Assembly: GCF_964194025.1 (NCBI RefSeq)
Contig: NC_134470.1
Coordinates: 25,916,001 to 25,980,000 of the forward strand
Reading direction: 5' to 3'
DNA from: Convolutriloba macropyga
Lineage: Eukaryota
DNA: 64,000 nt
The translations under genes were made by a program, and so were the position numbers. The notes beneath the pieces were generated by a model, which saw only the letters and a program-made list of their open reading frames with translations, had not been told where the DNA came from and did no database searches. Positions 10,337 through 64,000 of the stretch are shown here, one piece after another (position 1 is the stretch's first letter; every line of letters begins with the position of its first letter).

Positions 10337-10740
10337 AATAGATCTTAGTTCCGAATCCCGGAGGTGATTTTCTATTTTCATCAACATTTCATGAGAATCA
10401 TATATGGCCTAGGTACAATCGAGTTCTTCAGTTGGAAGTCAGTGGATGTTAGAATCAGGTTTCTGTAGGTGGGAAAATTTACTTCTGACACATGATTGAT
10501 AATAGTATTTATCTTTACAAAAAGTACAGAGAAAAATTATATTAGCTAAAAATATTTTACTTGGTTGCCATGCGAATAGATCTTAGTTCCGCATCCCGGA
10601 GGTGATTTTTTATTTTGATCCACTTTTCATGAGAATCATATATGACCTAGATACAATCGAGATCATCAGTTAGAGGTTGGTGGATGTTAGAGTCAGGTTT
10701 CTGTGGGTTGGAGATTTTTGTTTCTGACATCTGATTGATA
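10337..10740. repeat. Diverged direct repeat, ~165-bp copies ~238 bp apart
   Basis: AATAGATCTTAGTTCCG(A/C)ATCCCGGAGGTGATTTT...TTCTGACA(C/T)..GATTGATA at ~10337-10500 and ~10575-10740. Confidence 0.85.
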
Positions 10741-13700: not shown

Positions 13701-14938
13701 GTCAACTTTCAAACATTTATATTGAAGACAGGACACAAACTGTGGGAAATTGCTTCTGCAGGCAACGTTAACATATTTGGTTTGATTTTTGAGTTTAATT
13801 TCCAATTGATATTGCGCAGTACATTGAACCGTGTGGCAGCAAGCGCTGAATTGGCATCGTACCCAAACTGGCAGCGCTATGTTTGGAGAACGCCTTCATT
13901 TGACCAGAGGCGGTCTGTTCACTGGATTGATAAGATCATGAAGACAATTCTGGTGTTGCTGGTGCTGATAGTTCGTTTTTGAGAGTATGTAGTTTTTCGG
14001 ATGTTTCATGTGTAGTTTTTTTTGAGTGAATCTACGCTCTCAGCGCTTAGAACTCTGGTTGCTCGCTAAATTTTCCCTGCAAACATAAGCCCTTTGCTAC
14101 GCCTGCCGGAATGTCGATGTACTAATCAGAACAGTCGCTCCGTTTAGCTTGTTTCAATGAAATGCCTCTTCACACAGACCACTGAAGTCATTGTTGTTCC
14201 TTCAATCAATTCTACTCAGCAGTAATTGTTCTTTTTGCAGCCTACAGTTTTTTGTTACCTCCATTTTGATATCTGAGGACATAGTTAGATACTTCGAACA
14301 ACTCTATTCAGTTGCTCAGGTCTTGAAAATCTCCGCGCACCCATTCAAAACGCCAGTGAGCAGCTGTGAAAATTTCATGCAAAACTTTATCGGAATGAGC
14401 CGTGTTGTAGGAATGGTTGCAGCGGTTTTGACTTTAGGTTCTTTAGATTACTGTTAAATTGGTTCTCGGATTGGTTAGTTTGTTGAAGTACTTTTTAATT
14501 ATTTTTCTCTTACCGAAATGCGAGTACAAGTTATCAATCTGACCAGAATTTGCTCTGGGTACCCGTTGGATGTTACATAGTTGCTAGGTGAAATAACGGT
14601 ATGTTCAATTTGTGGTAAATTTGATCCTTGTTTCATGCTGTGAGCCCAACTGAGATACCGTACTTTTGTGTTGCCATTGTTGTGTTGAATTATCTGAAAG
14701 CTTATCTGAGGTGACAGGGAAAAAGCAGTTCTGCCTACTCGAACCTCAAAAATTTCATCAACCCAGAATTCTTGCAATTTCTTGGCTGAGTCCCATTTGC
14801 CGAAAATTTTCAGTTCAGTAACTTTTAGCGTAAAATTTTCCATGCACTGGGTCAGACTTGTTGAGAAAACTCCGGATCTTTTCCGTTTGCATCCGGCAGC
14901 TTAGTGGGTGCATATTATTTGCACCCCGGAGTCGCACG

Positions 14939-14942
<4 letters not shown>

Positions 14943-39500: not shown

Positions 39501-41885
39501 AATCTTTGGTTTTGGTCACTTCATTTTGATCACTGCTTTCTTTTGTTCGTTATTGTCTATCATTTCTCCTTAATTATTCGATGCTTTTCTGAACTCTCAT
39601 AATTAATTATCCTAGGCTAGAATCAGTATTTAACTTAAACTGGCTCTTTTATTCTTAAGTTCCGATAGATGAACCTTACTCGGTCCTCGCGAACGTACTG
39701 TAGTAATTATTTACGACACGATTAAGGCTTTTTCCATTCTACTGAGTTTTTAGTTATCGAAATAAATATTACAAAAATCTCAGAGAGCTATTGTATGCTG
39801 CATATAATATGAAGAATGAAACTAGGACCTGCTCGAAAACATGACGCATAACGAATTCTCCCTCTGATGTTGTTAATGATTTTTGGCAGGAATGATTCTG
39901 ACTCATTTATTGAAAAAGTTGGAAATTAAAGTCAAAATTGATCATTATCCCGTTGATTTTAAATAAATACCAGAGGAACAATTCGAAAACAGATTTGATA
40001 CTAACCTTGTTGTTTAACACTAAACTAAATATAAAGCATTCAAACTGACCAGTTGGTCGTCTAGGTAAAATTCCAGCATAGGTGCCATGGAGTCAACTTT
40101 CAACTTTTATCATCAAGTTTTATTTTGAACGCAAATTTTTAAATCAAACAACAGACTAGCAACTCTATAGCTTGATCACCCAGAGCAATTTCTACTATAT
40201 GGAAAACACGGGATCAATATTAAGAAATTGGTACCAACATCATTTGCTTGTGCGTTATCAAAAAATATTTAAATGATTGATAATAGTATACAAATTTCCC
40301 TCGTTTCAACTACAAAAATTGTTGTGTATGCCATTTTTGTCGAGGCATAATTTGTAAACACGTGATGCATATATAAAGTGTTTGGAGGGCATTAGAACCA
40401 AACTTCGTAACTGTCACGTTACTTGCTCTATTGGACGCATTTGACTGTTAGTCTCAAAACTCTTTATTGTATATATTACAGGGCAGAATACTGAGCCCAA
40501 AACCTTTTTCAAATAATATATCAACGATCTGAATTGCCGTATGTCTCATTCCCGTAGTGTCGTTCATTATATTAATGATTTGCATATTGATACATTTGCT
40601 GTCAGTACCAACTCCAAAACGGCGCTCAACGTCCTTACTCGTGTTTTAGTTTAAAGAAAACAGAAACTTCTTTATCACAAGCTAAAACATAAACTACTTC
40701 AAGTCATTCTATATCAAGCTTTTATTATCTCAACAAATTTTTGAAAGTTATATGTTCATTTACAGGGGGAGTAGGATAATAGGCGAAAGGAATTTTTGTA
40801 GAAATTAGGAATTAAAGTTTTGAGGAATTTAAACCAATGCCTATTCAAATACTTAAAAGAGGTAAAACAATAAAGGATTGATGACATAATGTGGTCAAAT
40901 GACTAAAACAATGGTCTTCGTAGAGAAACAGCTAACAAAGAATGACCAGAGTGTCAGAATGTAGTTTTCCTACATCTCCCTCAATTTTCTGCGCTTTTAC
41001 CATCAAAACTGTTGATGTGTAACGTTGAACTTTCAGATTAACTTTTCTTTCCCTGTTTCTTTTTTAAAATCAAAATCTTTGGCCATGATGACACTGACTG
41101 AGTAGATTTTAGGAGATGCAAATCATTGACGAAAAAGAAACCTTTTGCTTGTATCGCGTTTCCCAATTAAGATATCCTTTAACCATTAATTTAGTTTGTC
41201 GACCAGCACAAAAAGCGGGAGAATTAAGCATGTTCAAGTAATGTTTTTCGTCAATACCAGAAAAGTAGTCACTTCAGAACAGGTATCCGCCTTTTCAACA
41301 CGTTTTCCTTAAATTTTTTCTCCTGAAAGGAAAGTGCAAATAATTTTTTTCATTTTCAAAATAAATTTAAAAGAAAAAATGATTGGAACATTTTTTGCCT
41401 CTCATTGGAGAGACTTTAAATTAAAATACTTTTTCTCTTTTAGAGCGGGATAATGTTTATCTTATCTTCGTTTTACCACAACATTGATACAACATCAAAA
41501 TCAAATAAGGCAACTAGCCTTATTTGATACAACGTCAAATAAGGCTAGTTATTCCCTTGAAGAAACTCCCTCTTGAAAAATGTTTTCAATAAGATTAATG
41601 ATTTAATGATTAAATAAACTAATGTCCTATTTAGGAGCCGTTAGAAGTGTATAAATATTGTTCCGACCCCACTTGTGGGGGAAGGAACTATATACTCAAA
41701 TGGGTTTTTTTGTTCAGACAATTGTGGTGGATCGATATATTCATCGGAGAGGAATGTCAGTGGTATCATTAAAAACTCAGCTCGTCCAGCATAGAGTTAG
41801 GAATTAAAGAGTTTTTTTTAATTTCTTGTTTTTCGAGGAGTTATAGGGGTACAATTTTTTTCTAAAAGAAATTTCTTTGTGAGTT
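36505..41885. repeat. Near-identical tandem duplication, ~2.69-kb unit (36505-39198 and 39199-~41885)
   Basis: TTTGATTGTACACATGTTTTAAGGTCTC at ~36505 and ~39199. Collinear to TTTCTTTGTGAGTTT at ~39195 and ~41880. Confidence 0.95.
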
Positions 41886-46244: not shown

Positions 46245-46666
46245 ATGAAACCCTTATATTGCTCAGATCAGGATTCTGTTTTTCATTCTCCTCTAGGAGA
46301 ATACAACTACGCATCAGAGAAATGGGAAAGCATGAAGCACTTTTTGTCTGATATATTCTTGGGAGAGTATCGTGAGAGTAGAGTGATTGAGTCCCTGTCA
46401 GAGAGAAGTCTCTCTTACGAGGAATTATACAGGAGAGGAGAAGAGGTCTCATCTCAACTGAGGAGACAGTTTGGAGTGTGTGAAGGATCCATTGTTCACA
46501 TTGTGAGTGAGAATGGATTTGATTGGCTCACAATCCTCCTCGCCTCCTACTTGAACAACTCTATCCTCTCAGCCACTCATCCTAAGTCACCATGGCCAGA
46601 GTGCGAGAGGAACATTGAGACCACGTGTTCGACAGTCCTCATTGTGTCTGAAAAATGTTACAAAAG
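46245..46666 (+). CDS. First coding exon of an ANL-family acyl-CoA synthetase (4-coumarate-CoA ligase/luciferase-like)
   Basis: ATG at 46245. SLSYEELYRR...FGVCEGSIVHIVSENGFDW...HPK...STVLIVSE matches the N-terminal part of AMP-binding enzymes. Donor AG|gtatat at 46666/46667. No further exons seen in the window. Confidence 0.75.
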
Positions 46667-47404
46667 GTATATTTTTTGACGCTCCCCACACCGCATGTCA
46701 ATTCTGTGAAACGAAAAACGTATACTTGTGGTGATGGCGTCGTATTTTATGTAAGATTAACGCAGTCGGCGTTAAAAACAAAATGTCGTTGCTTTTTTAA
46801 CGTCAATCTTACCTATATTAGCGTCGATAATACCTTGATCTTAGATGAATAAGTGTCAAAACATTGCATTTGATCTTCAAAACGATGTTGGATCTTTTTT
46901 GCTAGCGCCCCCACCCCAGCCCTATATAGTCGTTATTACAGCAACCCCAAAATCTAAGTTTTCCTGAATTGTAAGAACGTATTTGCATTTAACTGAAACA
47001 AGAGTGACTAGGTAGATTGAAGGCACTTTTAGAATAGTTTCCTTATAAAAATTTTAAAATCGAGCCCTTATTGTAGCCACCCGGTGCTACGATTCTCATT
47101 TTTCTTGCCAAGTTCCTATTTGGGACTTGCCAAGATCAGAAGAAATCCTATCAGGAATCCTATTGGGAAACTTACCAAGAATTGTAGGTGGTGGTAAGTA
47201 TATGCAAGTTCTCACTTTTCCCACTAGGAATTTTGAGAAACCTCGGAATCCTAGCAAGAAAAATGGGCACAATAAGAATCTTGCTAGGAAATTTTGAGAC
47301 TCTTTAGGATTCTCGTCAGGAAAAGTGGGAGATAATGGGTTTCCCAGTGAGAAAAATGAGAAAACAGTGGGATTGTTTGTAGGGAAAATCAGTACTAGAG
47401 TTAG

Positions 47405-47731
47405 CCAGGACCCGCAAAAAGTTGTTTCAGAGAAGCCGGGACAGTAAAGCACAAAAGCACACGATAAGGGTGAGGGACCCATAGAAGCCGGGACCCTAAA
47501 AAAACAAAAGCTGTCCCAGAAAAGCCACAACAGAAGAGCAGAAGCACACAAGGGATGGGGAGGGACCCAGAGAAGCCGGGATCCTAAAAGAACCAAAAGC
47601 TGTCCCAGAGAAGCCGGGACAGTAAAGCACAAAAAAACACAATAATGGGGAGGGACCCAGAGAAGCCGGAACCCTAACAAAACAAAAGCTGTCCCAGAGA
47701 AGCCAGGACAGAAAAGCAGAAGCACACAAGG
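47405..47731. repeat. GC-richer minisatellite, core CCCAGAGAAGCCGGGAC, alternating ~38/~51-bp spacing (~89-bp period)
   Basis: Seven core copies at about 47428, 47477, 47515, 47566, 47604, 47656 and 47693. Confidence 0.85.
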
Positions 47732-50700
47732 GTCTTTTCGATCCGAAGAATTGATAAATCTCATTCGCGACAGTTGTCCAACACGAAATTTGAATTGAAC
47801 TGTCATCCTGACCAACCAGTGAGTCACTCAAGGCCCATACCCTTTTCAATAGCATTTCTTCTAAACATACGTCAAAATATGACCAGTCATATGCGACAGA
47901 TAACAGGAAAAACGAGAACTGAAGAAAATTTTGGGTTCAGTTTACCCCTTAAGTTGATTTTTCGAGAAAAAATTATCATAAAAACCTTTTTCTAGTGTAA
48001 AACCAAGCTACAATAGTCACCCCATCTTTTGTTATTTGAAAAAGGATGTAAGCAATACTCTCCTTTGACCTCAAACAATTTTGAAATGGTCTTTTTGATC
48101 CGAAGAATTGATAAAACTCATTCGCGACAGTTGTCCAACACGAAATTTGAATTGAACTGTCATCCTAACCAATCAGTCAGGCTTTCAAAGACAAAACTTT
48201 TTGTAAATAGCGTGTTTTGTAACCAGACGTTAATATACGATCAGTCATATGCGAAAGATAACACTTAAAAACGGAAACTGAAGAAAATTTTGGGTTCATT
48301 TTACCCCTTAAGTTGGTTTTTGGTGAGAAAAAATTATCAGAAAAAACCCTCCGCTAGTGTGTAACCACGCTACGTTAGTCCTCCTATCTTTTGGTTTATG
48401 AATCAGGATGTAAGCAATGATCTCCTCTGACCTCAAACAGTTTTGAGATGGTCTTTTCGATCCGAAGAATTGATAAATCTCATTCGCGACAGTTGTCCAA
48501 CTCGAAATTTGAATTGAATTGTCATCCTAACCAACCAGTCAGGCTTTCAAGGACAATACGTTTTGTAAATAGCGTGTTTTGTAACCAGACGTTAATATAC
48601 GATCAGTCATATGCGAAAGATAACACTTAAAAACGAAAACTGAAGAAACTTTTGGGTTCATTTTACCCATTAAGTTGAGTTTTGGAGAGAAAAAGAATTA
48701 TGAGAAAAAACCTTCCGCTAGTGTGAAACCACGCTACGTTAGTCCTCCTATCTTTTGGTTTTTGAATTAGGATGTACGCAATAATCTCCTCTGACCTCGC
48801 ACAATTTTGAAATGGTCTTTTCGATTCGAAGAATTGATAAATCTCATTCGCGATAGTTGTCCAACACGAAATTTGAAATGAACTGTCATCCTAACCAACC
48901 AGTGAGGCTCTCAAGGAAAATACTTTTTGTAAATAGCATGTTATCTAAACATACGTGAAAATATGACCAGTTATACGCGATAGATAACAGGAAAAACGAG
49001 AACTGAAGAAAATTTTGGGTTCATTTTACCACTTAAGTTGATTTTTCGAGAGAAAAAATTATCATAAAAACCTTTTTCTAGTGTAAAACCAAGCTACAAT
49101 AGTCACCCCATCTTTTGTTATTTGAAACAGGATGTAAGCAATACTCTCCTTTGACCTCAAACAATTTTGAAATAGTCTTTTTGATCCGAAGAATTGATAA
49201 AACTCATTCGCGACAGTTGTCCAACACGAAATTTGAATTGAACTGTCATCCTAACCAATCAGTCAGGCTTTCAAAGACAAAACTTTTTGTAAATAGCGTG
49301 TTTTGTAACCAGACGTTAATATACGATCAGTCATATGCGAAAGATAACACTTAAAAACGGAAACTGAAGAAAATTTTGGGTTCATTTTACCCCTTAAGTT
49401 GGTTTTTGGTGAGAAAAAATTATCAGAAAAAACCCTCCGCTAGTGTGTAACCACGCTACGTTAGTCCTCCTATCTTTTAGTTTTTGAATCAGGATGTAAG
49501 CAATGATCTCCTCTGACCTCAAACAGTTTTGAGATGGTCTTTTCGATCCGAAGAATTGATAAATCTCATTCGCGACAGTTGTCCAACTCGAAATTTGAAT
49601 TGAATTGTCATCCTAACCAACCAGTCAGGCTTTCATGGACAATACTTTTTGTAAATAGCGTGTTTTGTAACCAGACGTTAATATACGATCAGTCATATGC
49701 GAAAGATAACACTTAAAAACGGAAACTGAAGAAAATTTTGGGTTCATTTTACCCCTTAAGTTGGTTTTTGGTGAGAAAAAATTATCAGAAAAAACCCTCC
49801 GCTAGTGTGTAACCACGCTACGTTAGTCCTCCTATCTTTTAGTTTTTGAATCAGGATGTAAGCAATGATCTCCTCTGACCTCAAACAGTTTTGAGATGGT
49901 CTTTTCGATCCGAAGAATTGATAAATCTCATTCGCGACAGTTGTCCAACTCGAAATTTGAATTGAATTGTCATCCTAACCAACCAGTCAGGCTTTCATGG
50001 ACAATACTTTTTGTAAATAGCGTGTTTTGTAACCAGACGTTAATATACGATCAGTCATATGCGAAAGATAACACTTAAAAACGAAAACTGAAGAAACTTT
50101 TGGGTTCATTTTACCCATTAAGTTGAGTTTTGGAGAGAAAAAAAATTATGAGAAAAAACCTTCCGCTAGTGTGAAACCACGCTACGTTAGTCCTCCTATC
50201 TTTTGGTTTCTGAATTAGGATGTACGCAATAATCTCCTCTGACCTCGCACAATTTTGAAATGGTCTTTTCGATTCGAAGAATTGATAAATCTCATTCGCG
50301 ATAGTTGTCCAACACGAAATTTGAAATGAACTGTCATCCTAACCAACCAGTGAGGCTCTCAAGGAAAATACTTTTTGTAAATAGCATGTTATCTAAACAT
50401 ACGTGAAAATATGACCAGTCATACGCGATAGATAACAGGAAAAACGAGAACTGAAGAAAATTTTGGGTTCATTTTACCACTTAAGTTGATTTTTCGAGAG
50501 AAAAAATTATCATAAAAACCTTTTTCTAGTGTAAAACCAAGCTACAATAGTCACCCCATCTTTTGTTATTTGAAACAGGATGTAAGCAATACTCTCCTTT
50601 GACCTCAAACAATTTTGAAATGGTCTTTTCGATCCGAAGAATTGATAAATCTCATTCGCGACAGTTGTCCAACACGAAATTTGAATTGAACTGTCATCCT

Positions 50701-53700
50701 AACCAACCAGTCAGGCTTTCAAAGACAATACTTTTTGTAAATAGCGTGTTTTGTAACCAGGCGTTGATATACGATCAGTCATATGCGAAAGATAACACTT
50801 AAAAACGGAAACTGAAGAAAATTTTGGGTTCATTTTACCCCTTAAGTTGATTTTTGGTGAGAAAAAATTATCAGAAAAAACCCTCCGCTAGTGTGTAACC
50901 ACGCTACGTTAGTCCTCCTATCTTTTGGTTTTTGAATCAGGATGTAAGCAATGATCTCCTCTGACCTCAAACAGTTTTGAAATGGTCTTTTCGATCCGAA
51001 GAATTGATAAATCTCATTCGCGACAGTTGTCCAACTCGAAATTTGAATTGAACTGTCATCCTAACCAGCCAGTCAGGCTTTCAAGAACAATACTTTTTGT
51101 AAATAGCGTGTTTTGTAACCAGACGTTAATATACGATCAGTCATATGCGAAAGATAACACTTAAAAACGAAAACTGAAGAAACTTTTGGGTTCATTTTAC
51201 CCATTAAGTTGAGTTTTGGAGAGAAAAAAAAATTATGAGAAAAAACCTTCCGCTAGTGTGAAACCACGCTACGTTAGTCCTCCTATCTTTTGGTTTTTGA
51301 ATCAGGATGTACGCAATAATCTCCTCTGACCTCACACAATTTTGAAATGGTCTTTTCCATTCGAAGAATTGATAAATCTCATTCGCGATAGTTGTCCAAC
51401 ACGAAATTTGAAATGAACTGTCATCCTAACCAACCAGTGAGGCTCTCAAGGAAAATACTTTTTGTAAATAGCATGTTATCTAAACATACGTGAAAATATG
51501 ACCAGTCATACGCGATAGATAACAGGAAAAACGAGAACTGAAGAAAATTTTGGGTTCATTTTACCCCTTAAGTTGATTTTTCGAGAGAAAAAATTATCAT
51601 AAAAAACCTTTCGCTAGTGTGAAACCAAGCTAAAATAGTCCTCCCATCTTTTGTTATTTGAAACAGGATGTAAGCAATACTCTCCTTTGACCTCAAACAA
51701 TTTTGAAATGGTCTTTTCGAGTCGAAGAATTGATAAATCTCATTCGCGACAGTTGTCCAACATGAAATTTGAATTGAACTGTCATCCTAACCAACCACTG
51801 AGGCTCTCAAGGACAATACTTTTTGTAAAAAGCATGTTATCTAAACATACGTCAAAATATGACCAGTCATATGCGATAGATAACAGGAAAAACGAGAACT
51901 GAAGAAAATTTTGGGTTCATTTTACCCCTTAAGTTGATTTTTCGAGAGAAAAAATTATCATAAAAAACCTTTCACTAGTGTGAAACCACGCTAGAATAGT
52001 CCTCCTATCTTTTGGTATTTGAATCAGGATGTAAGTAATGATCTCCTCTGACCTCAAACAATTTTGAAATGGTCTTTTCGAGTCGAAGAATTGATAAATC
52101 TCATTCGCGACAGTTGTCCAACATGAAATTTGAATTGAACTGTCATCCTAACCAACCACTGAGGCTCTCAAGGACAATACTTTTTGTAAAAAGCATGTTA
52201 TCTAAACATACGTCAAAATATGACCAGTCATATGCGATAGATAACAGGAAAAACGAGAACTGAAGAAAATTTTGGGTTCATTTTACCCCTTAAGTTGATT
52301 TTCGAGAGAAAAAATTATCATAAAAAACCTTTCGCTAGTGTGAAACCACGCTAGAATAGTCCTCCTATCTTTTGGTATTTGAATCAGGATGTAAGCAATG
52401 ATCTCCTCTGACCTCAAACAATTTTGAAATGGTCTTTTCGATCCGAAGAATTGATAAATCTCATTCGCGACAGTTGTCCAACACGAAATTTGAATTGAAC
52501 TGTCATCCTAACCAACCAGTCAGGCTTTCAAAGACAATACTTTTTGCAAATAGCGTGTTTTGTAACCAGACGTTAATATACGATCAGTCATATGCGAAAG
52601 ATAACACTTAAAAACGAAAACTGAAGAAAATTTTGGGTTCATTTTACCCCTTAAGTTGAGTTTTGGTGAGAAAAAATTATCAGAAAAAACCTTCCGCTAG
52701 TGTGAAACCACGCTACGTTAGTCCTCCTATCTTATGGTTTCTGAATCAGGATTAAAGCAATAATCTCCTCTGACCTCAAACAATTTTGAAATGGTCTTTT
52801 CGATTCGAAGAATTGATAAATCTCATTCGCGACAGTTGTCCAACACGAAATTTGAATTGAACTGTCATCCTAACCAACCAGTCAGGCTTTCAAAGACAAT
52901 AATTTTTGCAAATAGCGTGTTTTGTAACCAGACGTTAATATACGATCAGTCATATGCGAAAGATAACACTTAAAAACGAAAACTGAAGAAAATTTTGGGT
53001 TCATTTTACCGCTTAAGTTGAGTTTTGGTGAGAAAAAAATATCAGAAAAAACATTCCGCTAGTGTGAAACCACGCTACGTTGGTCCTCCTATCTTATGGT
53101 TTCTGAATCAGGATTAAAGCAATAATCTCCTCTGACCTCAAACAATTTTGAAATGGTCTTTTCGATTCGAAGAATTGATAAATCTCATTCGCGATAGTTG
53201 TCCAACACGAAATTTGAATTGAACTGTCATCCTAACCAACCAGTGAGGCTCTCAAGGACAATACTTTTTGTAAATAGCAAGTTATCTAAACATACGTGAA
53301 AATATGACCAGTCATATGCGATAGATAACAGGAAAAACGAGAACTGAAGAAAATTTTGGGTTCATTTTACCCCTTAAGTTGAGTTTTGGTGAGAAAAAAT
53401 TATCAGAAAAAACCTTTCGCTAGTGTAAAACCAAGCTACAATAGTCCTCCCATCTTTTGTTATTTGAAACAGGATGTAAGCAATACTCTCCTTTGACCTC
53501 AAACAATTTTGAAATGGTCTTTTCGAGTCGAAGAATTGATAAATCTCATTCGCGAAAGTTGTCCAACATAAAATTTGAATTGAACTGTCATCCTAACCAA
53601 CCAGTGAGGCTCTCAAGGACAAAAATTTTTGTAAAAAGCATGTTATCTAAACATACGTCAAAATATGACCAGTCATATGCGGTAGATAACAGGAAAAACG

Positions 53701-56440
53701 AGAACTGAAGAAAATTTTGGGTTCATTTTACCCCTTAAGTTGATTTTTCGAGAAAAAATTATCATAAGAAACCTTTCGCTAGTGTGAAACCACTTTAGAA
53801 TAGTCCTCCTATCTTTTGGTATTTGAATCAGGATGTAAGCAATGATCTCCTCTGACCTCAAACAATTTTCAAATGGTCTTTTCGATCCGAAGAATTGATA
53901 AATCTCATTCGCGACAGTTGTCCAACACGAAATTTGAATTGAACTGTCATCCTAACCAACCAGTCAGGCTTTCAAAGACAATATTTTTTGTAAATAGCGT
54001 GTTTTGTAACCAGACGTTCATATACGATCAGTCAAATGCGAAAGATAACACTTAAAAACGAAAACTGAAAAAAATTTTGGGTTCATTTTACCCCTTAAGT
54101 TGATTTTTGGTGAGAAAAAATTATCAGAAAAAACCCTCCGCTAGTATGAAACCACGCTACGTTAGTCCTCCTATCTTTTGGTTTTTGAATCAGGATTAAA
54201 GCAATAATCTCCTCTGACCTCAAACAATTTTGAAATGGTCTTTTCGATTCGAAGAATTGATAAATCTCATTCGCGATAGTTGTCCAACACGAAATTTGAA
54301 TTGAACTGTCATCCTAACCAACCAGTGAGGCTCTCAAGGACAATACTTTTTGTAAATAGCATGTTATCTAAACATACGTGGAAATATGACCAGTCATATG
54401 CGATAGATAACAGGAAAAACGAGAACTGAAGAAAATTTTGGGTTCATTTTACCCCTTAAGTTGAGTTTTGGTGAGAAAAAATTATCAGAAAAAACCTTTC
54501 GCTAGTGTAAAACCAAGCTACAATAGTCCTCCCATCTTTTGTTATTTGAAACAGGATGTAAGCAATACTCTCCTTTGACTTCAAACAATTTTGAAATGGT
54601 CTTTTCGAGTCGAAGAATTGATAAATCTCATTCGCGACAGTTGTCCAACATAAAATTTGAATTGAACTGTCATCCTAACCAACCAGTGAGGCTCTCAAGG
54701 ACATTACTTTTTGTAAAAAGCATGTTATCTAAACATACGTCAAAATATGACCAGTCATATGCGATAGATAACAGGAAAAACGAGAACTGAAGAAAATTTT
54801 GGGTTCATTTTACCCCTTAAGTTGATTTTTCGAGAGAAAAAATTATTATAAAAAACCTTTCGCTAGTGTGAAACCACGCTAGAATAGTCCTCCTATCTTT
54901 TGGTATATGAATCAGGATGTAAGCAATAATCTCCTCTGACCTCAAACAATTTTGAAATGGTCTTTTCGATCCGAAGAATTGATAAATCTCATTCGCGACA
55001 GTTGTCCAACACGAAATTTGAATTGAACTGTCATCCTAACCAACCAGTCAGGCTCTCAAGGACAATACTTTTTGTAAATAGCATGTTATCTAAACATACG
55101 TCAAAATATGACCAGTCCTATGCGATAGATAACAGGAAAAACGAGAACTGAAGAAAATTTTGGGTTCATTTTACCCCTTAAGTTGAGTTTTGGTGAGAAA
55201 AAATTATCAGAAAAAACCTTTCGCTAGTGTAAAACCAAGCTACAATAGTCCTCCCATCTTTTGTTATTTGAAACAGGATGTAAGCAATACTCTCCTTTGA
55301 CTTCAAACAATTTTGAAATGGTCTTTTCGAGTCGAAGAATTGATAAATCTCATTCGCGACAGTTGTCCAACATAAAATTTGAATTGAACTGTCATCCTAA
55401 CCAACCAGTGAGGCTCTCAAGGACAATACTTTTTGTAAAAAGCATGTTATCTAAACATACGTCAAAATATGACCAGTCATATGCGATAGATAACAGGAAA
55501 AACGAGAACTGAAGAAAATTTTGGGTTCATTTTACCCCTTAAGTTGATTTTTCGAGAGAAAAAAGTATTATAAAAAACCTTTCGCTAGTGTGAAACCACG
55601 TTAGAATAGTCCTCCTATCTTTTGGTATATGAATCAGGATGTAAGCAATAATCTCCTCTGACCTCAAACAATTTTGAAATGGTCTTTTCGATCCGAAGAA
55701 TTGATAAATCTCATTCGCGACAGTTGTCCAACACGAAATTTGAATTGAACTGTCATCCTAACCAACCAGTCAGGCTCTCAAGGACAATACTTTTTGTAAA
55801 TAGCATGTTATCTAAACATACGTCAAAATATGACCAGTCCTATGCGATAGATAACAGGAAAAACGAGAACTGAAGAAAATTTTGGGTTCATTTTACCCCT
55901 TAAGTTGATTTTTCGAGAGAAAAAATTATTATAAAAAACCTTTCGCTAGTGTGAAACCACGCTAGAATAGTCCTCCTATCTTTTGGTATATGAATCAGGA
56001 TGTAAGCAATAATCTCCTCTGACCTCAAACAATTATGAAATGGTCTTTTCGATCCGAAGAATTGATAAATCTCATTCGCGACAGTTGTCCAACACGAAAT
56101 TTGAATTGAACTGTCATCCTAACCAATCAGTCAGGCTTTCAAAGACAAAACTTTTTGTAAATAGCGTGTTTTGTAACCAGACGTTAATATACGATCAGTC
56201 ATATGCGAAAGATATCACTTGAAAACGAAAACAGAAGAAAATTTTGGGTTCATTTTACCCCTTATGTTAAGTTTTGGAGAGAAAAAATTATCCAAAAAAC
56301 CTTTTCTCTAGTGTGAAACCACGCTACGTTAGTCTTCCTATCTTTTGGTGTTTGAATCAGGATGTAAGCAATAGCCTCTTATGACCTCAAACAATTTTGA
56401 AATTGTCTTTTCAATTCGAAATGATAAATCTCATTCGCAA
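47732..56440. repeat. Satellite array, ~361-bp monomer, ~24 copies, two main subtypes with irregular higher-order structure
   Basis: GTCTTTTCGA(T/G)(C/T)CGAAGAATTGATAAATCTCATTCGCGA recurs every ~360-363 bp from 47732 to ~56405. Repeated short ORFs at 49534/49896, 52429/52791 etc. show the period. Confidence 0.98.
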
Positions 56441-56555: not shown

Positions 56556-57736
56556 TTAATCGCGCTCAAAAGTTACGCAAAGTGTAGACAAAATTAAGCG
56601 TCCGTCTATTTCTCGAACAATGCAAGGCGATAAAAGTTTTTTCACATCAACTAAGGTGACATCACTATTCGCACACTGAATTAAATGATGATTTTCGTAG
56701 CAGCTACTGACCAATTCAAGCCCCTCGTCCAAATTCACTGCTACTCTGGAATGCTCGGTTGGTGACGAGTGATTTTCGAGTTTCTGTATAAGAAAACCTG
56801 TGAATGTTTTCGATGAGTCAAAATCAACAAGATGCACAGCTGCACTTTTTTCCGAAACATCAACAAATATGTCAGTCAACTGACCAAAACCTGTCGCGCC
56901 TTCTTTTTCATACTCAACAAAATGCACGCAGGTTTTGTTAACGTTCCAAGTACATTTACTGCCGTGACAAGCATACATCTTAGAATCTAGCTCAAACGTC
57001 TTGCTTGACATTAAAGTCTCCCGGCTTCCATTTACTTCAATTATACGCTCCGTAGGCTGAAGCAGCTTGAGTGAACCCACTGTTATCGTCTTCGAGTTTC
57101 CCTTTAACTTTTTCCTGAAAAATCGTCTTTGATGCCGTTTGACTGCTAGCTTTGTAGCAACAATGGCACTTGTGTTTGGACCAATAGCGCGTTTCAGATG
57201 AAAATGAGCGGACTCAAATGGAATTGACGACAATGAAGCCAAGGGTCCCGTCTTTTTTGCCTGGTCAGCTAGATGACCGAGAGAATGCATATTGTAACTT
57301 TGAGCCGCTTCTCCATAAAAATTAGGAACCAATTTCCGAAAAATTTTGATAAGAACCTCTGCCTTGTCATAACTCTGCTCTCTGACCGGTTCAATTAAAT
57401 AACGTATTGCAGTACTCAGTAGATAGAAGTGCACAAACATGGGCACTGAGAGAACACCAAAAAAAGACACAAAGCCGTATAAGAGAAACAACTTCAGTTC
57501 TGTTGCCTTCCAATATTTGAGTGTTACTAGAGATCGCAATTGTCTTTTGTTGTCAGTTCCTGGCACCTTACACTTTGAAAGGTTGGCTGACACTTGCGTT
57601 TTATTCCGGCCCAAAAATTTTCTCGATCCGTTGATTCTGCAGAGAAGGGTTTTGACAACACCAAGGAGCACTTGATGCATGTAGTCTATCAGCATTTCAT
57701 CGGGGAGAGTAACAACACTTTCAATTGCTGAGGGCC
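56556..57736 (-). CDS. SET-transposase fusion, exon 2: C-terminal half of CACTA/EnSpm-like DDE transposase
   Basis: IDYMHQVLLG, WKATELKLFLLY and YNMHSLGHL...GPL...SSIPFES motifs. Acceptor tttttgtttag|GG joins exon 1 in frame (LYGLRG-PSAIE). Stop at 56556. Confidence 0.9.
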
Positions 57737-57870
57737 CTAAACAAAAAGATATCCAAAACAATTGGAAAATTTTTTGAGTTTTTAAGGGACTCTAGGAAAA
57801 AAACAGTGACTAAACGTTCTTAAACTCGAGCTATGCAGTAATGGGAGAAAGAAAAGATCAGAAATATTAC

Positions 57871-59734
57871 CTCTTAAACCATATAATGATCTGCACTCTG
57901 ATCCCAGGCATTCCAAAATTAACTGCCGCTCTTTTGATGTCCTTTGAGACACATCAGGCTCATGGAACGGATAAATCCAGGTATCTTTAGCCAGAGCTCT
58001 ACGTCCAACAGCTAGGCAATTCGTGCACCCATAACGCCCATTAAACTGAGTTTGGTTCACTAGAGGTGCTTTCATTACCATATCAACAATTACGTATTTT
58101 AGCTTCACAGTGAACGTATAGGAACTCCCATTTATCTGGAGAACCTTTGGCGAACTGAAACCTGACAGGATTTTGACTGTATGTTTCATCAGATTTTCAC
58201 AATGCGGTTTTTTTTCTCCACCAAATAATGAAACTAAGAGTAAATTCCGGTAGCTAACACGTCGCCTTGCGGGTAAGTTGAGAAGCATGAGCCAGACTGG
58301 GTACAGAGAAAATTTAGCTGAGTTAAAAGGAGAAACCCCGTCAGTGCTTAGAGCAAAATATAAACAGAATTTATTCGACTTCGGTAAACACAAGTCAGTC
58401 TGGAGTTGATAACCTTCAGTGCTAACAAGATCAAAATTTTCACTGAGCAAGTGACTGAGTTGTCGCTCAAAATTAAGGTCATACAGGAGGCCTTCTGGTA
58501 GTTGAGTTTCACTAAGGCCAGATAGTGAACTGATTTCTTGTTGTCTTAGTGAATATAAGCTCGGCAAATTGTTAGCTGCAGGTAACGCTTTTCTAAACAA
58601 GGAAAGAACTGCGCCCAAACCACGCTCGGGGAGATTATGAATGTCAGCTAATTCTATTAACTCAGAGCAAAATGATCGGGTAGTCAAACTCGAACCCAAA
58701 CAGATCATCTCTTCAATTTCAGAGCTACTTGTCATGTTCGACCTTTCACGCCTTTCATCATCAGAGTGATCACCTTGAGACCCTATCGGCTCTAAAAGCT
58801 CTTCGTCGTTGTCCGATATAAAGTCAATTCTATTAGGCGTTGAGCATTCCTTTTCTCTTACATTGTCAAAAAAAAGATTAGCTTCGGATGAAATGCCTAG
58901 ACTTTCATTTTCTGATATATCGGGCGACGCAGTAATAGAGCTCGAAGACTCGGAAGATGTTTCGTATCTGACTCTGTACCGAGACTTCTTAATTCTTCGC
59001 GGCTGATAAGTTGGCCCAACATCTCGATGTCGCCTACGAAGTTTTTGAAGAGCTCGTTGCTCTGTGGTACTTGTCACGAGCCGTTCGCTAACAGTGCTTA
59101 GGCTTCTAACTTTTCCAGAGCGCGTCCAACTTTGAATTGGATGTTCTTTACCGTGCATTTCAGAGAAGGGACATTCGCAATGCACTCTATTTGGGCCAAA
59201 ATAATCACCACTGTATAGCACAGTTATTTCATCACCAGGAAAAAGACCGTTTCTTGAAATCACTCGAATGCTCACTTTCGTTCGCTTTGAATTCCCAACA
59301 TAAGTACAGTTTTCCCTGCAACTAGAATTGATGAAGGAAACGCCTCCTAGCATAATTTTCGATCCCGTATGATGACGAAAAACCGACACATCGTTAACAC
59401 CCTCAACAATTTCGCATTCTTTAATCGGAGCCAAGAAACCAACAAGACCAGGTATAACATCTCCTTTCACAAATCTTTTCTTAGCAAAGACGCCAAAGCT
59501 TGTGAAACCGTTGTCCATTTTAAAATTTGAAGAAAGAGCTCGATACTCAACGTTTAACAAAGACAGAACATATTCCTTCTCAATTTCGTTTTTCAGATGA
59601 CTGAATCCGGACTGGTTTTTAAGAGATAAGTCGCAGACAATTTTATGGGAAACTTTGCCGTCCGAATCAATGTACTTCGAAGTGAGTTCAGCATCTGCTA
59701 ACGCTAAGTCATGCCAAAATATATGACGATTCAT
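57871..59734 (-). CDS. SET-transposase fusion, exon 1: Suv4-20/Set9-like SET domain, low-complexity linker and N-terminal half of CACTA/EnSpm-like transposase
   Basis: ATG at 59734. SET at ~59150-59500: GVFAKK, LVGFLA, NDVSV, LGGVSFINSSCRENC, GDEITVLYSGDYFG...CEC. Transposase: STDGVSPF..S.YPVW...NLP...R...N...KP and IVDMVMKA...NGRYGCTNC. Donor G|gtaata at 57871/57870. Confidence 0.9.
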
Positions 59735-59774
59735 GTTTTGTACTAAAGTATGAAACAAAGGAGTCAATTGGGTG

Positions 59775-60055
59775 TGGAAAAACTTAGAAAACAGTATATT
59801 CAAACAATTTCAAACACCGACCAGGCTATCTAAATTTGGTGTCGATCCCCTAACGAGCGTGATTTGAACCAGTTTAAAGTTGTATCAACCGAAAAGAAAG
59901 ACAAAGGATGAATTGCTTTGGCTAAAGTTTTATTTCATTTCAATTGCCTTATCCCACATTGTGAAACAGTTGGAATGGGTTATAATGAGAACGGAAAAAG
60001 CGTGCAGCGAAAAATTAGCAGGCCACAGAGGTTGAATTTAAAAATAAAACATTTT
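59775..60055 (-). promoter_or_regulatory. ~290-bp paralogous upstream module, copy 1 (others at ~61150-61425 and ~62332-62605); putative promoter/5' leader
   Basis: Shared blocks GGCTATC(T/C)AA, AAAGTT..TCAA, TATCCCA and AATGAGAACGGAAAAA in all three copies, each just upstream of a minus-strand ATG. Function is inferred. Confidence 0.5.
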
Positions 60056-60181: not shown

Positions 60182-60715
60182 TTAACAATTTTTGCAGCAA
60201 AAAATTTCGGATTCTACAAAGCAATCATTGCAACTAAATTCTCCGCACTTCGGACATTCTACAAAGTCAGCATTTGTGGATTTGACATTTATGCGGCAGA
60301 CCGCACATCGTAGTGGCAAGAAAGAGCCAAAGCTTGAAGTCAAATTCCGTTTCTTGAAGCTTTGCCACCATTCAGTTCCTGCTTCCTGCCGTTCATGCCA
60401 AGTTGCAGGGAAGTTCACATCATAGTACTTCCCCTTTTGATAAACATATCCCAGTATTTGCTTTAGTTGTCTTTTTCTTTGTGAGCACCAACCTTTGATA
60501 TCAGTAGCCATGGCTGCCTCTTGGATTTTGTTGAACACGTTCCTCTGAGCAGGACTATTGGTCTTCAGCTTCCTTTTCAGGGTACTCAGTGGCACACCCG
60601 TAGACCGTGCAACACATCTTGCTCCATAATTCCCCTCTTGCACCAAAAACAACGCCATCTTCAAATCATACTCTGTGTAGCTATGAGCGGTTTTTCGTTC
60701 GTAGGATCTAGGCAT
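60182..60715 (-). CDS. HTH-psq + CENP-B-type HTH + C-terminal 8-Cys PHD-like finger protein (pogo/Tigger-like, no DDE domain), 177 aa
   Basis: MPRSYERKT..YTEYDLKMAL..V..G......VARSTGVPLSTLKRKL; AGTEWWQSFKKRN; C-x2-C-x13-C-x2-C-x4-C-x2-C-x8-C-x2-C at the C-terminus. Confidence 0.8.
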   Translation of the reverse strand: MPRSYERKTAHSYTEYDLKMALFLVQEGNYGARCVARSTGVPLSTLKRKLKTNSPAQRNVFNKIQEAAMATDIKGWCSQRKRQLKQILGYVYQKGKYYDVNFPATWHERQEAGTEWWQSFKKRNLTSSFGSFLPLRCAVCRINVKSTNADFVECPKCGEFSCNDCFVESEIFCCKNC

Positions 60716-60945
60716 TTTGCATCTTAAACAGTTACACAAACGGAGACAATAATTGTTTCAAAAATTGATGCGTTATCTATGTTATTTAGTAAGATGTTCC
60801 ACAAAGATGTGTCGTAAAAATCAAATTCTAAAAAACGGTTCGATTCATTTGCAGGTTCTTCGGGGGACAACAAAACGAAAAGTCCAGGTTGGCATTGTCT
60901 AATTCAGAAAAAATTGAGCTCAAAAAAGGAATACAAAGAAAATAC

Positions 60946-61112
60946 AACATATTCCTTCTCAATTTCTTTTTTCACATGACTGAATGCCGACTGGTTTTTA
61001 TGAGACAAGTCACAGAAAATTTTATGGAAACTTTGCCGTCCGAATAAATATACTTTGAAGTGAGCTCAGCATCTGCTAACGCTAAGTCATGCCAAAAAAT
61101 ATGACCATTCAT
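60946..61112 (-). pseudogene. Frameshifted, truncated duplicate of the 5' end of the SET-transposase gene
   Basis: Matches 59567-59734. Reads MNGHIFWHDLALADAELTSKYIYSDGKVS, then a 1-bp deletion (GTTTCCATA vs GTTTCCCATA) and an early stop. Confidence 0.85.
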
Positions 61113-61637
61113 GTTTCGCACTGAAGTATGAAACGAAAGGAGTCAACTAGGTGTGGGAAAATTTAGCATATTAAAACAATTAAACACAGCCCGGGCTATC
61201 TAAATTTGATCTCAATCACCTAACTGGCCCAATTTCAACGAGGTTAAAGTTTGATCAACCAAAAAGAAAGAAAGCAGAAACTGGTTTGGTTAAGCTTTTA
61301 CATCATTTCAAATGTTTTATCCCAACTTGCGGAGCAGTTGACATGAGTGATAATGAGAACGGAAAAAGATTGCGAAAAAACTGGAAGCCAACAGAAGGTG
61401 AATTTATGAATACCGAAAACTTTTTACCATCAATAAGAGTCATTTTAAAAGGCTAAAAAACTTGTATCAAAACAATATTAACACAACAGCATCAGTAAAA
61501 GTAAAATAAAATCAAGAACTTCTGGTTCAAAAAGTATTATCGCTGTATAGAATACTGTATGAGAGACGCTGTATAAACCAGGAAACGATCCATCGTAATT
61601 GCTCGAATTGTTTTCAAATCGAAGGCTTTCAAAACTC

Positions 61638-62959: not shown

Positions 62960-64000
62960 TCACCCTTCAGTGACCACCCCAAAGCCATCATTTTCCTTCG
63001 ACGCATCCAGATCCTCCTTTTCAAAATTCTCAGCACTAGCATCCATCAACCGTTTCTTGACTTTTTTCGAGTCCCGTGCACAATCATTTATCGACTTTCG
63101 CGCAAGATACCATTGTCCAGGGAAACGCTCCTCGACCATCTTCTGAATTTTTTCCATGCGCTCAGGATCTAAAGCTGGTTTTGTTGCCTTCTCTGGTTGC
63201 GCAATTCCTCTAATTCGCTCATCTAAGGTGAATAATCTTTTAAAAAGATTAATACCAAATTTACCGGGCGTGCTCCCGGGCAGCTTATTGAGCACTTCGC
63301 CTCCTTCAATAAATTGCTCGCACGCACTGGCTTTCGGTGTTGGCTGCGCCGAAACTTCAGGAGCGTTAGAGTCTAGAAGCTTTCGAATATTTCGAGAATC
63401 TCGTCTTTGGATGTTCAATGCTTCGGTGACGAGCTTGAGCGTTTCACAAACGCTTTCTAGAGTCTCTACAAGGCGTTTATTTTGAACTTGATTAACAGCA
63501 ACTTCCACATTCTCGCTTACTTCTGGTTCATCGTTTACATCGTTGATCATTGCTGTTTCAGCCTCTTGATTTGGTTGATGTGTTTCCTCGTTATCAGACA
63601 AGTTAATAGACTCATTATCGCTCTCTACCCGGATTGACTTCGATCCTGACTGCACCGGTTCTGTCGCTTTTCGTTTTCCGGAAAAGAACGACACGATGTC
63701 GCCATCTTTCTTTTGCGGGGGTTGACTTTTGCAATTTTGAGACTTGGAACTGTCTGGCAGTTCTTCATGAAGATCAGAGAACGTTAAATCAACCATTTCT
63801 GTAGAGGACACATTGTCAATCCTGTTTTCTACTTGCGTGAGTACTTGCCTCTCAGAATCCTCAGAATCCGTCACACCAATGAACTTAGCGTGAAAAGTAC
63901 CCTCGTCATAGCGCAACGGTAGTTTTTTGTTCGAGCCCGGCGCATTCGCGAACTTCAATCGTTCCGAGTAGTTTAAGTCCTTCGGCCAAAACTTGCTATT
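62960..64000 (-). CDS. BEN-domain protein (BEN-2), 5' end beyond the window
   Basis: Frame is open to the window edge (NSKFWPKDLNYSERLKF...). Acidic linker and coiled coil, then FGINLFKRLFTLDERIRG...ALDPERMEKIQKMVEERF...WYLARKSINDCARD. Paralogous to BEN-1 (GSTPGKFG vs GATPGAYG). Confidence 0.82.
   Translation of the reverse strand, partial: NSKFWPKDLNYSERLKFANAPGSNKKLPLRYDEGTFHAKFIGVTDSEDSERQVLTQVENRIDNVSSTEMVDLTFSDLHEELPDSSKSQNCKSQPPQKKDGDIVSFFSGKRKATEPVQSGSKSIRVESDNESINLSDNEETHQPNQEAETAMINDVNDEPEVSENVEVAVNQVQNKRLVETLESVCETLKLVTEALNIQRRDSRNIRKLLDSNAPEVSAQPTPKASACEQFIEGGEVLNKLPGSTPGKFGINLFKRLFTLDERIRGIAQPEKATKPALDPERMEKIQKMVEERFPGQWYLARKSINDCARDSKKVKKRLMDASAENFEKEDLDASKENDGFGVVTEG

Follow-up and report, generated by a model that had tools for sequence, protein, structure and literature searches.

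The window, a 64,000-nt stretch of the Convolutriloba macropyga genome, carries on its minus strand an intact gene in which a Suv4-20-type SET module is fused in frame to a CMC-type transposase. Three further genes and two repeat arrays accompany it. The features are listed below in the order of their coordinates.

47081..47730: 89-bp tandem array (47417-47718) and about 340 bp of unique sequence
47731..56438: 361-bp satellite in 24 copies, adjoining the transposase gene on its 3' side, within the unit common to other copies
56556..57736, minus: exon 2 of the SET-transposase gene, aa 622-1014 and the stop codon
57737..57870, minus: intron of 134 nt, GT-AG, phase 1
57871..59734, minus: exon 1, aa 1-621 and the first base of codon 622
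58690..59134 (approximate bounds), minus: linker of Ser/acidic/basic low complexity, about aa 201-348
59135..59734, minus: Suv4-20-like module, aa 1-200, with N-domain helices, SET core and post-SET CxC...H
60182..60715, minus: accessory gene C, 177 aa, helix-turn-helix (psq/CENP-B/resolvase-like) with a Cys-rich tail
60943..61432, minus: degenerate duplicate of the SET-gene upstream region and first ~57 codons
61638..62153, minus: accessory gene B, 171 aa, coiled coil and BEN domain (Pfam BEN, 1.7e-5)
62960..64000, minus: accessory gene A, ~398 aa, C-terminal BEN-like domain

Gene structure and neighbouring genes

Two minus-strand ORFs were called in this region, with full extents of 57782..59803 and 56556..57761, and splicing joins their segments 59734-57871 and 57736-56556 into one reading frame. 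Starting from the first ATG at 59734, the spliced coding sequence of 3045 nt encodes 1014 amino acids without an internal stop. The intron begins with GTAATA and ends with a pyrimidine tract followed by TTTAG. Each of the other five members of the window subfamily keeps it with GT/AG ends, and its divergence (0.068) equals dS. It is missing from intronless subfamilies, whose 1021-1073-aa products are colinear with the 1014-aa protein over its full length. The alignment to P0007, an intronless homolog of 1033 aa, runs through the splice junction (...YGLRG/PSAIESVV...) with no gap, and both proteins have the C-terminal sequence FERD. The initial annotation, made from sequence alone, had proposed this two-ORF, stop-free fusion of about 1014 aa with its 134-nt phase-1 intron, and the spliced coding sequence and the P0007 alignment bear it out.

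Exon 1 encodes the Suv4-20-like module, a linker predicted to be disordered and the N-terminal half of the DDE core, with D465, D551 and C570/C573. Exon 2 supplies the DYMH and HxxxH motifs, the catalytic Glu in PFES and a β-rich C-terminal domain whose fold was taken from the P0007 homolog. Because the SET module, the first two catalytic Asp residues and the CxxC motif all lie within exon 1, the fusion holds whatever the splice model, as had also been claimed. The linker opens with a conserved W-T-R-S-G-K-V-R motif and contains the basic clusters RRRHRD and RRIKKSRYRVR; its equivalent in P0007 (residues 199-352) is predicted to be disordered. Evidence from sequence, profiles, fold, paralogs and selection all supports an intact, in-frame fusion encoded as a single predicted polypeptide, for which there is no expression or splicing evidence. 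A Logan contig of 3307 nt with a 1038-aa SET-transposase ORF (L008) has an AATAAA past the stop codon but no poly(A) tail, and its end consists of TA repeats that look genomic; for these reasons we do not count it as transcript evidence.

The three accessory genes are kept across subfamilies and are co-inherited with the fusion, while their order is shuffled between subfamilies. The helix-turn-helix gene gives only a weak match to Pfam HTH_7 in the window but a match of 6e-8 in its L001 ortholog, and it is 30-43% conserved across subfamilies. It is now preceded by the degenerate duplicate of the SET-gene start, which has ~88% identity to its source and a 1-bp deletion. Accessory gene B is 38% conserved in other subfamilies, and the first ~52 codons of accessory gene A lie past the end of the window. 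ORFs of 60-83 aa at 53.8-56.2 kb were rejected as genes, since they repeat along with the satellite. A search of the window against Rfam returned no match. The locus of another copy, L002, contains a LINE reverse transcriptase, for which the named matches (sea cucumber, cichlid) reach only ~33% identity. The BEN domains and the type of LINE make a metazoan host probable.

The Suv4-20-like module and the transposase

The N-terminal ~200 residues are Suv4-20/KMT5B-C-like in sequence and in predicted fold. The motifs of the module are DAELTS (aa 14-19), SHK (29-31), NDVS (114-117), GDEITVLYSGDYFG (167-180) and CEC (186-188). The window protein matches the Pfam SET profile above its gathering score (E=3.8e-6). 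When PDB sequences were searched with phmmer, SUV420H1/H2 were the best matches (E~6e-12), followed at a distance by NSD2 as the next SET family (0.014), and a search with a family profile separated SUV420H1/H2 (4e-27) from KMT2D (2e-9). The window protein is thus nearer in sequence to Suv4-20 than to any other SET family. [quoted passage not shown] An AlphaFold2 model of aa 1-216 (pLDDT 87) was submitted to Foldseek, and all of the top 15 matches were SUV420H1/H2, with TM scores of 0.73-0.76 over ~235 columns. These matches span the whole crystal construct (structures of 232-243 residues), and the family-specific N-terminal helical domain is found in the predicted fold; other SET proteins matched over the core only, with a TM score of ~0.4.

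Across 25 of 25 SET sequences, residues G99, S117, N136, C139, N142, Y174, F179, C186 and C188 are invariant. The NHxC motif, in contrast, reads FINSSC in the window protein, with Ser in place of His, and this position is Ala, Asn or Ser elsewhere in the family, although some members have a canonical NHSC together with CxCxxC. The window clade apparently uses His194, not Cys, as the fourth post-SET ligand. In SUV420H1 the strand V252-T256 holds the H4 tail, and R257 and K258 contact DNA and H4 (PMC10697951). The SUV420H1 sequence VMYST-RK aligns to VFR(--)HH in the window protein, so that a 2-residue deletion shortens the strand and His-His stands at the positions of R257/K258; this H4-binding feature of SUV420H1 is not conserved. 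The assignment of the SET motifs to the H4K20 methyltransferase family in the initial annotation therefore held by sequence and fold, with the NHxC motif corrected to FINSSC. That the module methylates H4K20 remains an inference without enzyme data, because the window clade has lost the NHxC His and the H4-tail residues of SUV420H1 are not conserved.

Two other readings of the module were considered. The SET domain could be catalytically dead and serve as a reader-like domain that docks on the nucleosome or H4 tail and thereby tethers or targets the transposase to chromatin. This possibility cannot be set aside. It is favoured by the replacement of the NHxC His, by the changed H4-binding strand and R257/K258 positions, and by the conserved W-T-R-S-G-[KR]-V-[RK] motif after the post-SET region, in which two basic residues lie 5 apart; the acidic-patch anchors of SUV420H1, R352 and R357, have the same spacing (PMC10697951). 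Against it, some family members retain canonical NHSC and CxCxxC, and Asn136 of the SAM pocket, G99 of the GxG-type motif, Tyr174 and the Cys residues of the Zn cluster are invariant at only 20-50% identity. Because the SAM-pocket, catalytic and Zn residues stay invariant, a purely docking role is hard to reconcile with the data. Alternatively, the SET domain could be active but retargeted to another histone lysine, to the transposase itself or to the BEN/HTH partners. The substrate strand differs from that of SUV420H1/H2 while cofactor and catalytic positions are kept, and the fusion is inherited together with its partner proteins. However, the overall fold is retained, including the Suv4-20-specific N-domain, and no positive evidence points to any alternative substrate; we consider this reading unlikely.

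The transposase motifs of the window protein are STDG (463-466), IVDM (549-552), CTNC (570-573), DYMH (639-642), HSLGH (772-776) and PFES (794-797), which place the catalytic and metal-binding residues at D465, D551, C570/C573, H772/H776 and E796. All of the CMC signatures named in the initial annotation were thereby located. In two alignments of diverse sequences (A5, 12 sequences; A7, 71 sequences), the two Asp residues, CxxC, DxxH, HxxxH and the Glu are invariant or nearly so; at the positions just listed, conservation is complete or reaches at least 90%. The window transposase scores below the cut-off for Transposase_21 (22.7 bits, cut-off 28.6) and is also sub-threshold for DUF1258 (13.5 bits). 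Its homology to these families is transitive, because only relatives exceed the cut-offs (for example P0113, DUF1258, 51 bits; P0116, Transposase_21, 42 bits). At the family level DUF1258 (Mirage) outscores Transposase_21 (plant-type CACTA), and we therefore refine the CACTA/EnSpm label given previously to the safer "CMC" (PMC3985635). The fold was assessed on P0007 and not on the window protein: the model (pLDDT 80) matched RAG1 core structures over ~575 columns with E~1e-10 and target TM scores of 0.5-0.58. An affiliation with KDZ/Zisupton was rejected, as Pfam and fold evidence favour a CMC/RAG1-like assignment. The protein can be described in four parts, namely a Suv4-20-type module, a disordered linker of ~150 aa, a RAG1-core-like DDE domain with CxxC and HxxxH, and the β-rich C-terminal domain.

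Copies, selection and element ends

In assembly ERZ25071359 we found ~308 ORFs or fragments in 7 clusters, corresponding to at least seven subfamilies. Four of the six copies in the window subfamily are intact, and frameshifted copies exist beside intact ones. Eleven distant representatives carry both SET and transposase, and such relatives, only 21-26% identical, occur in a second assembly (ERZ25071366) and in SRA-derived Logan contigs. The capture of the SET module was therefore not recent. When the SET-bearing rows are constrained to group together, the resulting tree scores better than the one from an unconstrained quick search (p-AU 0.67), so one origin is not rejected, and a single early acquisition in the transposase lineage is likely. 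Among named entries, the profile search returned insect transposases without SET (Bradysia, Ooceraea) and fungal Set9 proteins without a transposase, and nothing else. The nearest SET-less relatives are ~700-800 aa long, and the fusion lineage adds ~440 N-terminal residues (SET and linker).

Between copies, dN/dS is 0.30 overall and 0.11-0.17 in the SET region, the lowest of the protein. The SET module is thus its most constrained part, more so than the catalytic core, and is under purifying selection. These results bear on the idea that the SET region is host sequence without function, picked up by transduplication (Pack-type capture), or that ORF calling or assembly created the fusion artificially. 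Only the prior expectation for captured host fragments speaks for this. A single uninterrupted SET-transposase ORF is present in many contigs, the SET region has the lowest dN/dS, and the fusion is kept at 21-26% identity, which together all but exclude it.

The search for element ends included a comparison of six window-subfamily copies and of three copies from another subfamily. Similarity between the window and copy L006 stops at 47081, past which the flanks diverge, and outside the shared unit the window, L006 and L002 have different flanking sequences. Copies L004-L007 are collinear over 17-20 kb with their flanking satellites included, as are L003/L009/L010, and collinearity runs on through the satellite arrays for as far as the loci were fetched. 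Since flanks and satellites are shared between copies for more than 17 kb, some of the amplification may be segmental. L002, L003, L011 and L012 showed no flanking inverted repeats, and the reverse complement of the 3' boundary sequence at 47081 was not found upstream in any locus. Neither terminal inverted repeats nor a target-site duplication was found in the fetched loci; the 3' limit at 47081 is the sole boundary set, and the 5' end of the window copy lies beyond the window, within repeat arrays.

Given these observations, the copies could instead belong to a host gene family of domesticated origin, comparable to SETMAR but expanded, which grew through segmental or tandem duplications within satellite-rich DNA. 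The missing terminal inverted repeats and target-site duplications, and the collinear satellite-flanked copies, agree with this view. On the other hand, a gene of the SETMAR type would be a single-copy, syntenic host gene with a degenerate transposase, and here there are many copies in at least seven subfamilies, frameshifted ones included, with the full DDE, CxxC and HxxxH set invariant. Intact and decayed copies occur in differing genomic contexts, gene order is rearranged among subfamilies, and the multi-gene content is CACTA-like. We regard domestication as very unlikely. The preferred reading, likely for architecture and transposon assignment taken jointly, is that a large CMC DNA transposon with several genes encodes, at this locus, its transposase and the SET module as a single polypeptide. 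The element also bears two BEN-domain genes, one helix-turn-helix gene and long satellite arrays. The proposal that a mobile element captured a host H4K20 writer is supported in its core, with refinements: the fusion belongs to a mobile-element family, the capture is old, and the writer activity is inferred.

Relation to known systems and possible function

SETMAR (Metnase), the primate SET-mariner protein, likewise joins an N-terminal SET methyltransferase and a C-terminal DDE-type transposase in one polypeptide. It differs in being a single-copy domesticated gene of anthropoid primates, in which a host SET gene captured Hsmar1 (Tc1/mariner) and the triad has degenerated to DDN. SETMAR is reported as an H3K36 enzyme, in line with the earlier statement that it involves a different SET family, whereas the SET module here is Suv4-20-type and is fused to a CMC-type transposase with an intact triad, in many copies and subfamilies, inside a multi-gene element. 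Suv4-20/KMT5B and KMT5C/Set9 are the best sequence, profile and fold match and share the N-terminal domain, the SET core and a post-SET region beginning with CxC. The module departs from host Suv4-20 in the Ser at the NHxC His position, in the different fourth Zn ligand of the window clade, in a shorter H4-tail strand and in altered R257/K258 equivalents, and a transposase takes the place of the host C-terminal region. Mirage (DUF1258) and CACTA/EnSpm (Transposase_21) elements resemble the present family in the Pfam matches, which pass the cut-offs in relatives of the window protein, and in the RAG1-like fold, and CACTA elements are also large, multi-gene and associated with repeat arrays (PMC12730594; PMC3985635). 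The present element differs from both by its added SET and linker, and CACTA-type termini were not identified in the window element.

SET and other epigenetic enzymes are known as transposon accessory genes in HarbingerS, Phytophthora MuDR and Helitrons; red-algal Plavaka PAG2 carries a DNA methylase and SET, and fungal KDZ, EnSpm and Plavaka elements carry TET/JBP (PMC12730594; bioRxiv 10.1101/2025.02.11.637652). In these cases, too, the enzyme that modifies chromatin or DNA is supplied by the DNA transposon, but it is described as the product of a separate gene and not as the N terminus of the transposase, in oomycetes, fungi and red algae, and with a SET domain not stated to be Suv4-20-like. 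We found no description of an in-frame Suv4-20-CMC fusion in the literature searched, which did not cover Repbase or Dfam; the initial annotation had likewise known of none. The fusion is old, conserved and apparently undescribed, while transposon-borne SET genes and SETMAR were already known.

The fusion suggests that the element marks or docks onto chromatin at the cut site. A mechanism can be pictured, which as a whole is inferred, is no more than possible, and is to be judged separately from the architecture. The helix-turn-helix and BEN proteins would bind the repeat arrays and recruit the transposase. The SET module would then engage the adjacent nucleosome and methylate a lysine in cis, by ancestry H4K20. 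The mark, or docking itself, may bring repair or heterochromatin factors that depend on H4K20me to the break made by excision or integration. H4K20 methylation acts in 53BP1-dependent repair, origin licensing and pericentric heterochromatin. SETMAR offers a parallel, as its SET activity has been linked to double-strand break repair by end joining; it is a precedent for SET-dependent help in end joining, and H4K20me attracts 53BP1 (PMC2847698). On a bolder reading, which is possible and rests on inferred activity, this is an ancient, still-active cut-and-paste lineage that couples cleavage to a working Suv4-20-type methyltransferase. If so, every excision or insertion would write H4K20 methylation on the neighbouring nucleosome, and the mark would direct how breaks are repaired, how replication origins are licensed, or how heterochromatin and satellites form at the element.

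Known links between transposons and histone methylation take the form of host domestication, as for SETMAR, or of a separate accessory gene; here the module is inside the transposase. The arrangement raises the question of whether a transposase gains from modifying or gripping the nucleosome beside the DNA it cuts. The family could also serve as a natural scaffold that combines a nuclease with a putative chromatin writer, for comparison with engineered epigenome editors. Finally, long satellite arrays recur with these elements, which hints at a role in the origin or packaging of such arrays.

Gene structure and transposase of the fusion

The ORF listing of the window contains two minus-strand frames, 57782..59803 (673 aa counted from an upstream TTG) and 56556..57761 (401 aa), and the first ATG of the SET-transposase gene lies at 59734. 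Minus-strand sequence across 58000-57650 reads ...GGTTTAAGAG / GTAATATTTC...TCTTTTTGTTTAG / GGCCCTCAGC... (slashes mark splice boundaries), from which we deduced a 134-nt phase 1 intron running from 57870 to 57737, with GT-AG ends and a pyrimidine tract. The spliced product of 59734-57871 and 57736-56556 is 3045 nt long and encodes 1014 amino acids without an internal stop. This model is independently supported by P0007, an intronless homolog of 1033 aa encoded as a single ORF on a different contig, since it aligns with the spliced protein from Met1 through a common C-terminal FERD (40% identity) and is gap-free at the splice junction. The intron GT and AG were retained in all five other copies of the window subfamily, and the intron has diverged among the copies (0.068) as much as synonymous sites have (about 0.07), which is what non-coding sequence should show. 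The initial annotation, made from sequence alone, had proposed this intron and a stop-free frame of ~1014 aa, and had stated that the fusion does not rely on the splice model. Both claims held, the second because exon 1 encodes the SET domain as well as the first transposase motifs.

The annotation had also claimed that the CMC (CACTA/Mirage/Chapaev) transposase signatures are kept, and all were located in the window protein:

aa 463-466, STDG
aa 549-552, IVDM
aa 570-573, CTNC
aa 639-642, DYMH
aa 772-776, HSLGH
aa 794-797, PFES

Among 12 diverse full-length proteins the corresponding D, D, C, C, D/H, H, H and E residues never varied, and in a set of 71 sequences each was either invariant or conserved at 90% or more; the pattern corresponds to the C(2)C and H(3-4)H signature that characterizes the CACTA-Mirage-Chapaev-Transib group (PMC12730594). 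The window protein scored below the Pfam cut-offs for Transposase_21 (22.7 bits) and DUF1258 (13.5 bits), which correspond to CACTA and Mirage, respectively (PMC3985635); relatives exceeded these cut-offs, more often for DUF1258 than for Transposase_21. In a full-length model of P0007 (pLDDT 80), a disordered segment (199-352) lies between two folded modules. Foldseek gave an alignment of about 575 columns between the C-terminal module and the RAG1 core (E~1e-10), and matched the N-terminal module to SUV420H1/H2. The transposase of the fusion is of the CMC type.

Ancestry, possible activity and precedents of the SET module

The SET match of the window protein exceeded the Pfam cut-off (E=3.8e-6). 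A sequence search of the PDB returned SUV420H1/H2 (KMT5B/C) as all ten best matches (about 6e-12), with NSD2 as the next family (0.014), and the gap widened when a profile from 12 diverse family members was used (4e-27 versus 2e-9). An AlphaFold2 model of residues 1-216 was confident (pLDDT 87, pTM 0.82), and its top 15 Foldseek matches were all SUV420H1/H2 (TM 0.73-0.76). At ~235 columns these alignments span the crystal construct completely, with the N-terminal domain particular to the family included; for other SET proteins the core alone was aligned (TM about 0.4). [quoted passage not shown] The SET module descends from a Suv4-20 enzyme, and the assignment to the H4K20 methyltransferase family in the initial annotation held for ancestry by sequence, profile and fold.

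Across 25 sequences with identities down to 20%, positions G99, S117, F134, N136, C139, N142, Y174, F179, C186 and C188 were invariant. Because these cofactor, catalytic and Zn positions persist while the surrounding sequence varies, we favor a retained methyltransferase activity, a reading inferred from residues that we hold only tentatively. A rival possibility is that the module is catalytically silent and has a docking role. Other features have changed. The window clade has Ser in place of the NHxC His (FINSSC), with NHSC retained in some family members, and the post-SET of the window protein is CxCPxxxxH, with the Suv4-20-type CxCxxC retained in the distant relatives P0113, P0124, P0116 and P0122. 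In SUV420H1 the strand V252-T256 grips the H4 tail and R257/K258 are required for activity (PMC10697951); the window equivalent in the PDB-hit alignment is VFR, a two-residue gap and HH. Given these changes, present-day H4K20 activity, which can only be inferred without assay data, is not well supported, unlike Suv4-20 ancestry, and a retargeted substrate is a further possibility. By inference, the module would act in cis on nucleosomes adjoining transposase-bound DNA. C-terminal to the post-SET region, the motif W-T-R-S-G-[KR]-V-[RK] is conserved; its two basic residues spaced by five resemble the acidic-patch anchors R352 and R357 of SUV420H1 (PMC10697951), an analogy that is no more than a lead.

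SETMAR provides a functional precedent for a SET role in a transposase fusion, as mutations in its SET domain impair end joining, with H4K20 methylation cited as a docking mark for 53BP1 (PMC2847698). As the initial annotation stated, SETMAR is a domesticated mariner fusion with a different SET family; it is also single-copy, and its transposase belongs to a different superfamily from that of the window fusion. A transposon-borne SET is not new, since HarbingerS, Phytophthora MuDR and Helitrons carry SET genes and a red-algal Plavaka, a CACTA relative, has a DNA-methylase + SET accessory gene (PMC12730594; bioRxiv 10.1101/2025.02.11.637652). No description of an in-frame Suv4-20-type SET and CMC transposase was found in the literature searched (Repbase/Dfam were outside the scope), nor did a profile search find named database proteins of this architecture. 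Within that scope the annotation's suggestion of an undescribed architecture held; the fusion itself is real and robust, and its architecture apparently undescribed.

Copies, phylogeny and accessory genes

A word-indexed search yielded ten clusters of relatives (30-99% identity), seven of which hold 1, 40, 34, 28, 96, 49 and 60 member ORFs; all member contigs that were retrieved belong to ENA assembly ERZ25071359. The members include many intact proteins of 1021-1073 aa encoded without introns, as well as many fragments. When P0007 was the query of an exhaustive HMMER search, 8435 relatives were returned, with E<=1e-30 for 148. SET and transposase occur together even at 21-26% identity, including in P0101 (assembly shared with the window), P0102, P0103 (Logan contig, run ERR13770114), P0108, P0113 (second assembly, ERZ25071366), P0114, P0116, P0122, P0124, P0126 and P0140.

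In a transposase-core tree of 112 rows, a split with good support had all SET-bearing rows on the same side, in two groups whose mutual relation was unresolved. Holding them together gave a tree better than the free quick-search tree by 17 log-likelihood units (p-AU 0.67), so a single acquisition of SET in the transposase lineage is not rejected and remains possible, with the caveat that the group was named only after inspection of the tree. SET features such as CxCxxC and NHSC follow the transposase clades. Comparison of the contig copy L002 with the other window-subfamily copies, including that of the window, gave an overall dN/dS of 0.30, lowest in SET (0.11-0.17) and higher in the linker (0.38-0.47) and transposase core (0.34-0.49). 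The copies in the window, L004, L005 and L006 are intact and those in L002 and L007 broken. The SET-transposase fusion is intact, conserved and multi-copy.

All window-subfamily copies have the same order: a 48-bp array, genes A, B and C, SET-transposase, 361-bp satellite, an 89-bp array and ~340 bp of unique sequence. The accessory genes encode:

gene A, a protein of about 398 aa with a BEN-like C-terminus
gene B, a BEN protein of 171 aa
gene C, an HTH protein of 177 aa with a Cys-rich tail

Their orthologs in other subfamilies are 28-44% identical, and gene C there lies downstream of the transposase; accessory DNA-binding genes travel with the fusion gene. In an internal ~490-bp duplication (window 59567-60046 and 60943-61432, ~88% identity), the sequence upstream of the SET gene and the initial ~57 codons of that gene recur before gene C with 1 bp deleted; the rearrangement that relocated gene C probably left this trace. 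Similarity between the window and L006 stops at window 47081, past which the flanks differ, and L002 is truncated within the 361-bp satellite, adjoining a LINE. The 5' side of the element leaves the window and in other copies continues into repeat arrays. Neither in the window nor in the retrieved copies could a TIR or TSD be identified.

Satellite arrays and neighboring features

Each SET-transposase subfamily examined has a long-period satellite array of its own, common to its copies, on the downstream side and in some cases upstream as well (the ~537 and ~887 bp periods are spacing estimates, not tandem-repeat-finder output):

window 47731-56438, 361-bp satellite, 24 units
L001 ~6400-15479, ~887-bp period
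L003 1-6324 and 14062-21800, ~537-bp period
L011 (contig from the other assembly) 12980-17775, ~340-bp period

The short ORFs (60-83 aa) between 53.8 and 56.2 kb are satellite read in frame and were rejected as genes. At L003 14523-20905 each ~537-bp unit carries a ~48-nt near-perfect palindrome (A-run, CCCCAGTGGGCC..GGCCCACTGGGG, T-run), a strong candidate for a hairpin or cruciform. In L004-L007 (1-4541) a common upstream 179/359-bp satellite directly adjoins the 48-bp array in all four copies; the coverages in their contig names (14x to 108x) suggest that some repeats are collapsed or vary in copy number. The 48-bp array of L002 is broken at 1285-3139 by ~1.9 kb with a 175-aa ORF, and the LINE beside its truncated satellite (18141-21100, endonuclease and reverse transcriptase, 825 aa) is only ~33% identical to its nearest named relatives.

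Other features of the window are:

46245-46679, plus strand, 144-aa ORF that matches AMP-binding enzymes significantly (Pfam 6e-9), ~400 bp past the element 3' limit; it is likely to be an exon from an acyl-CoA-synthetase-like gene of the host
29772-31516, minus strand, three successive ORFs (172, 149 and 220 aa); likely a decayed LTR-retroelement pol, given the integrase core (rve) domain in the third
~36476-37215 and ~39083-39906, near-identical short ORFs ~2.7 kb apart, such as MSQNHSCQKSL... at 37078-37215 and 39769-39906; they indicate a direct duplication or other repeat family
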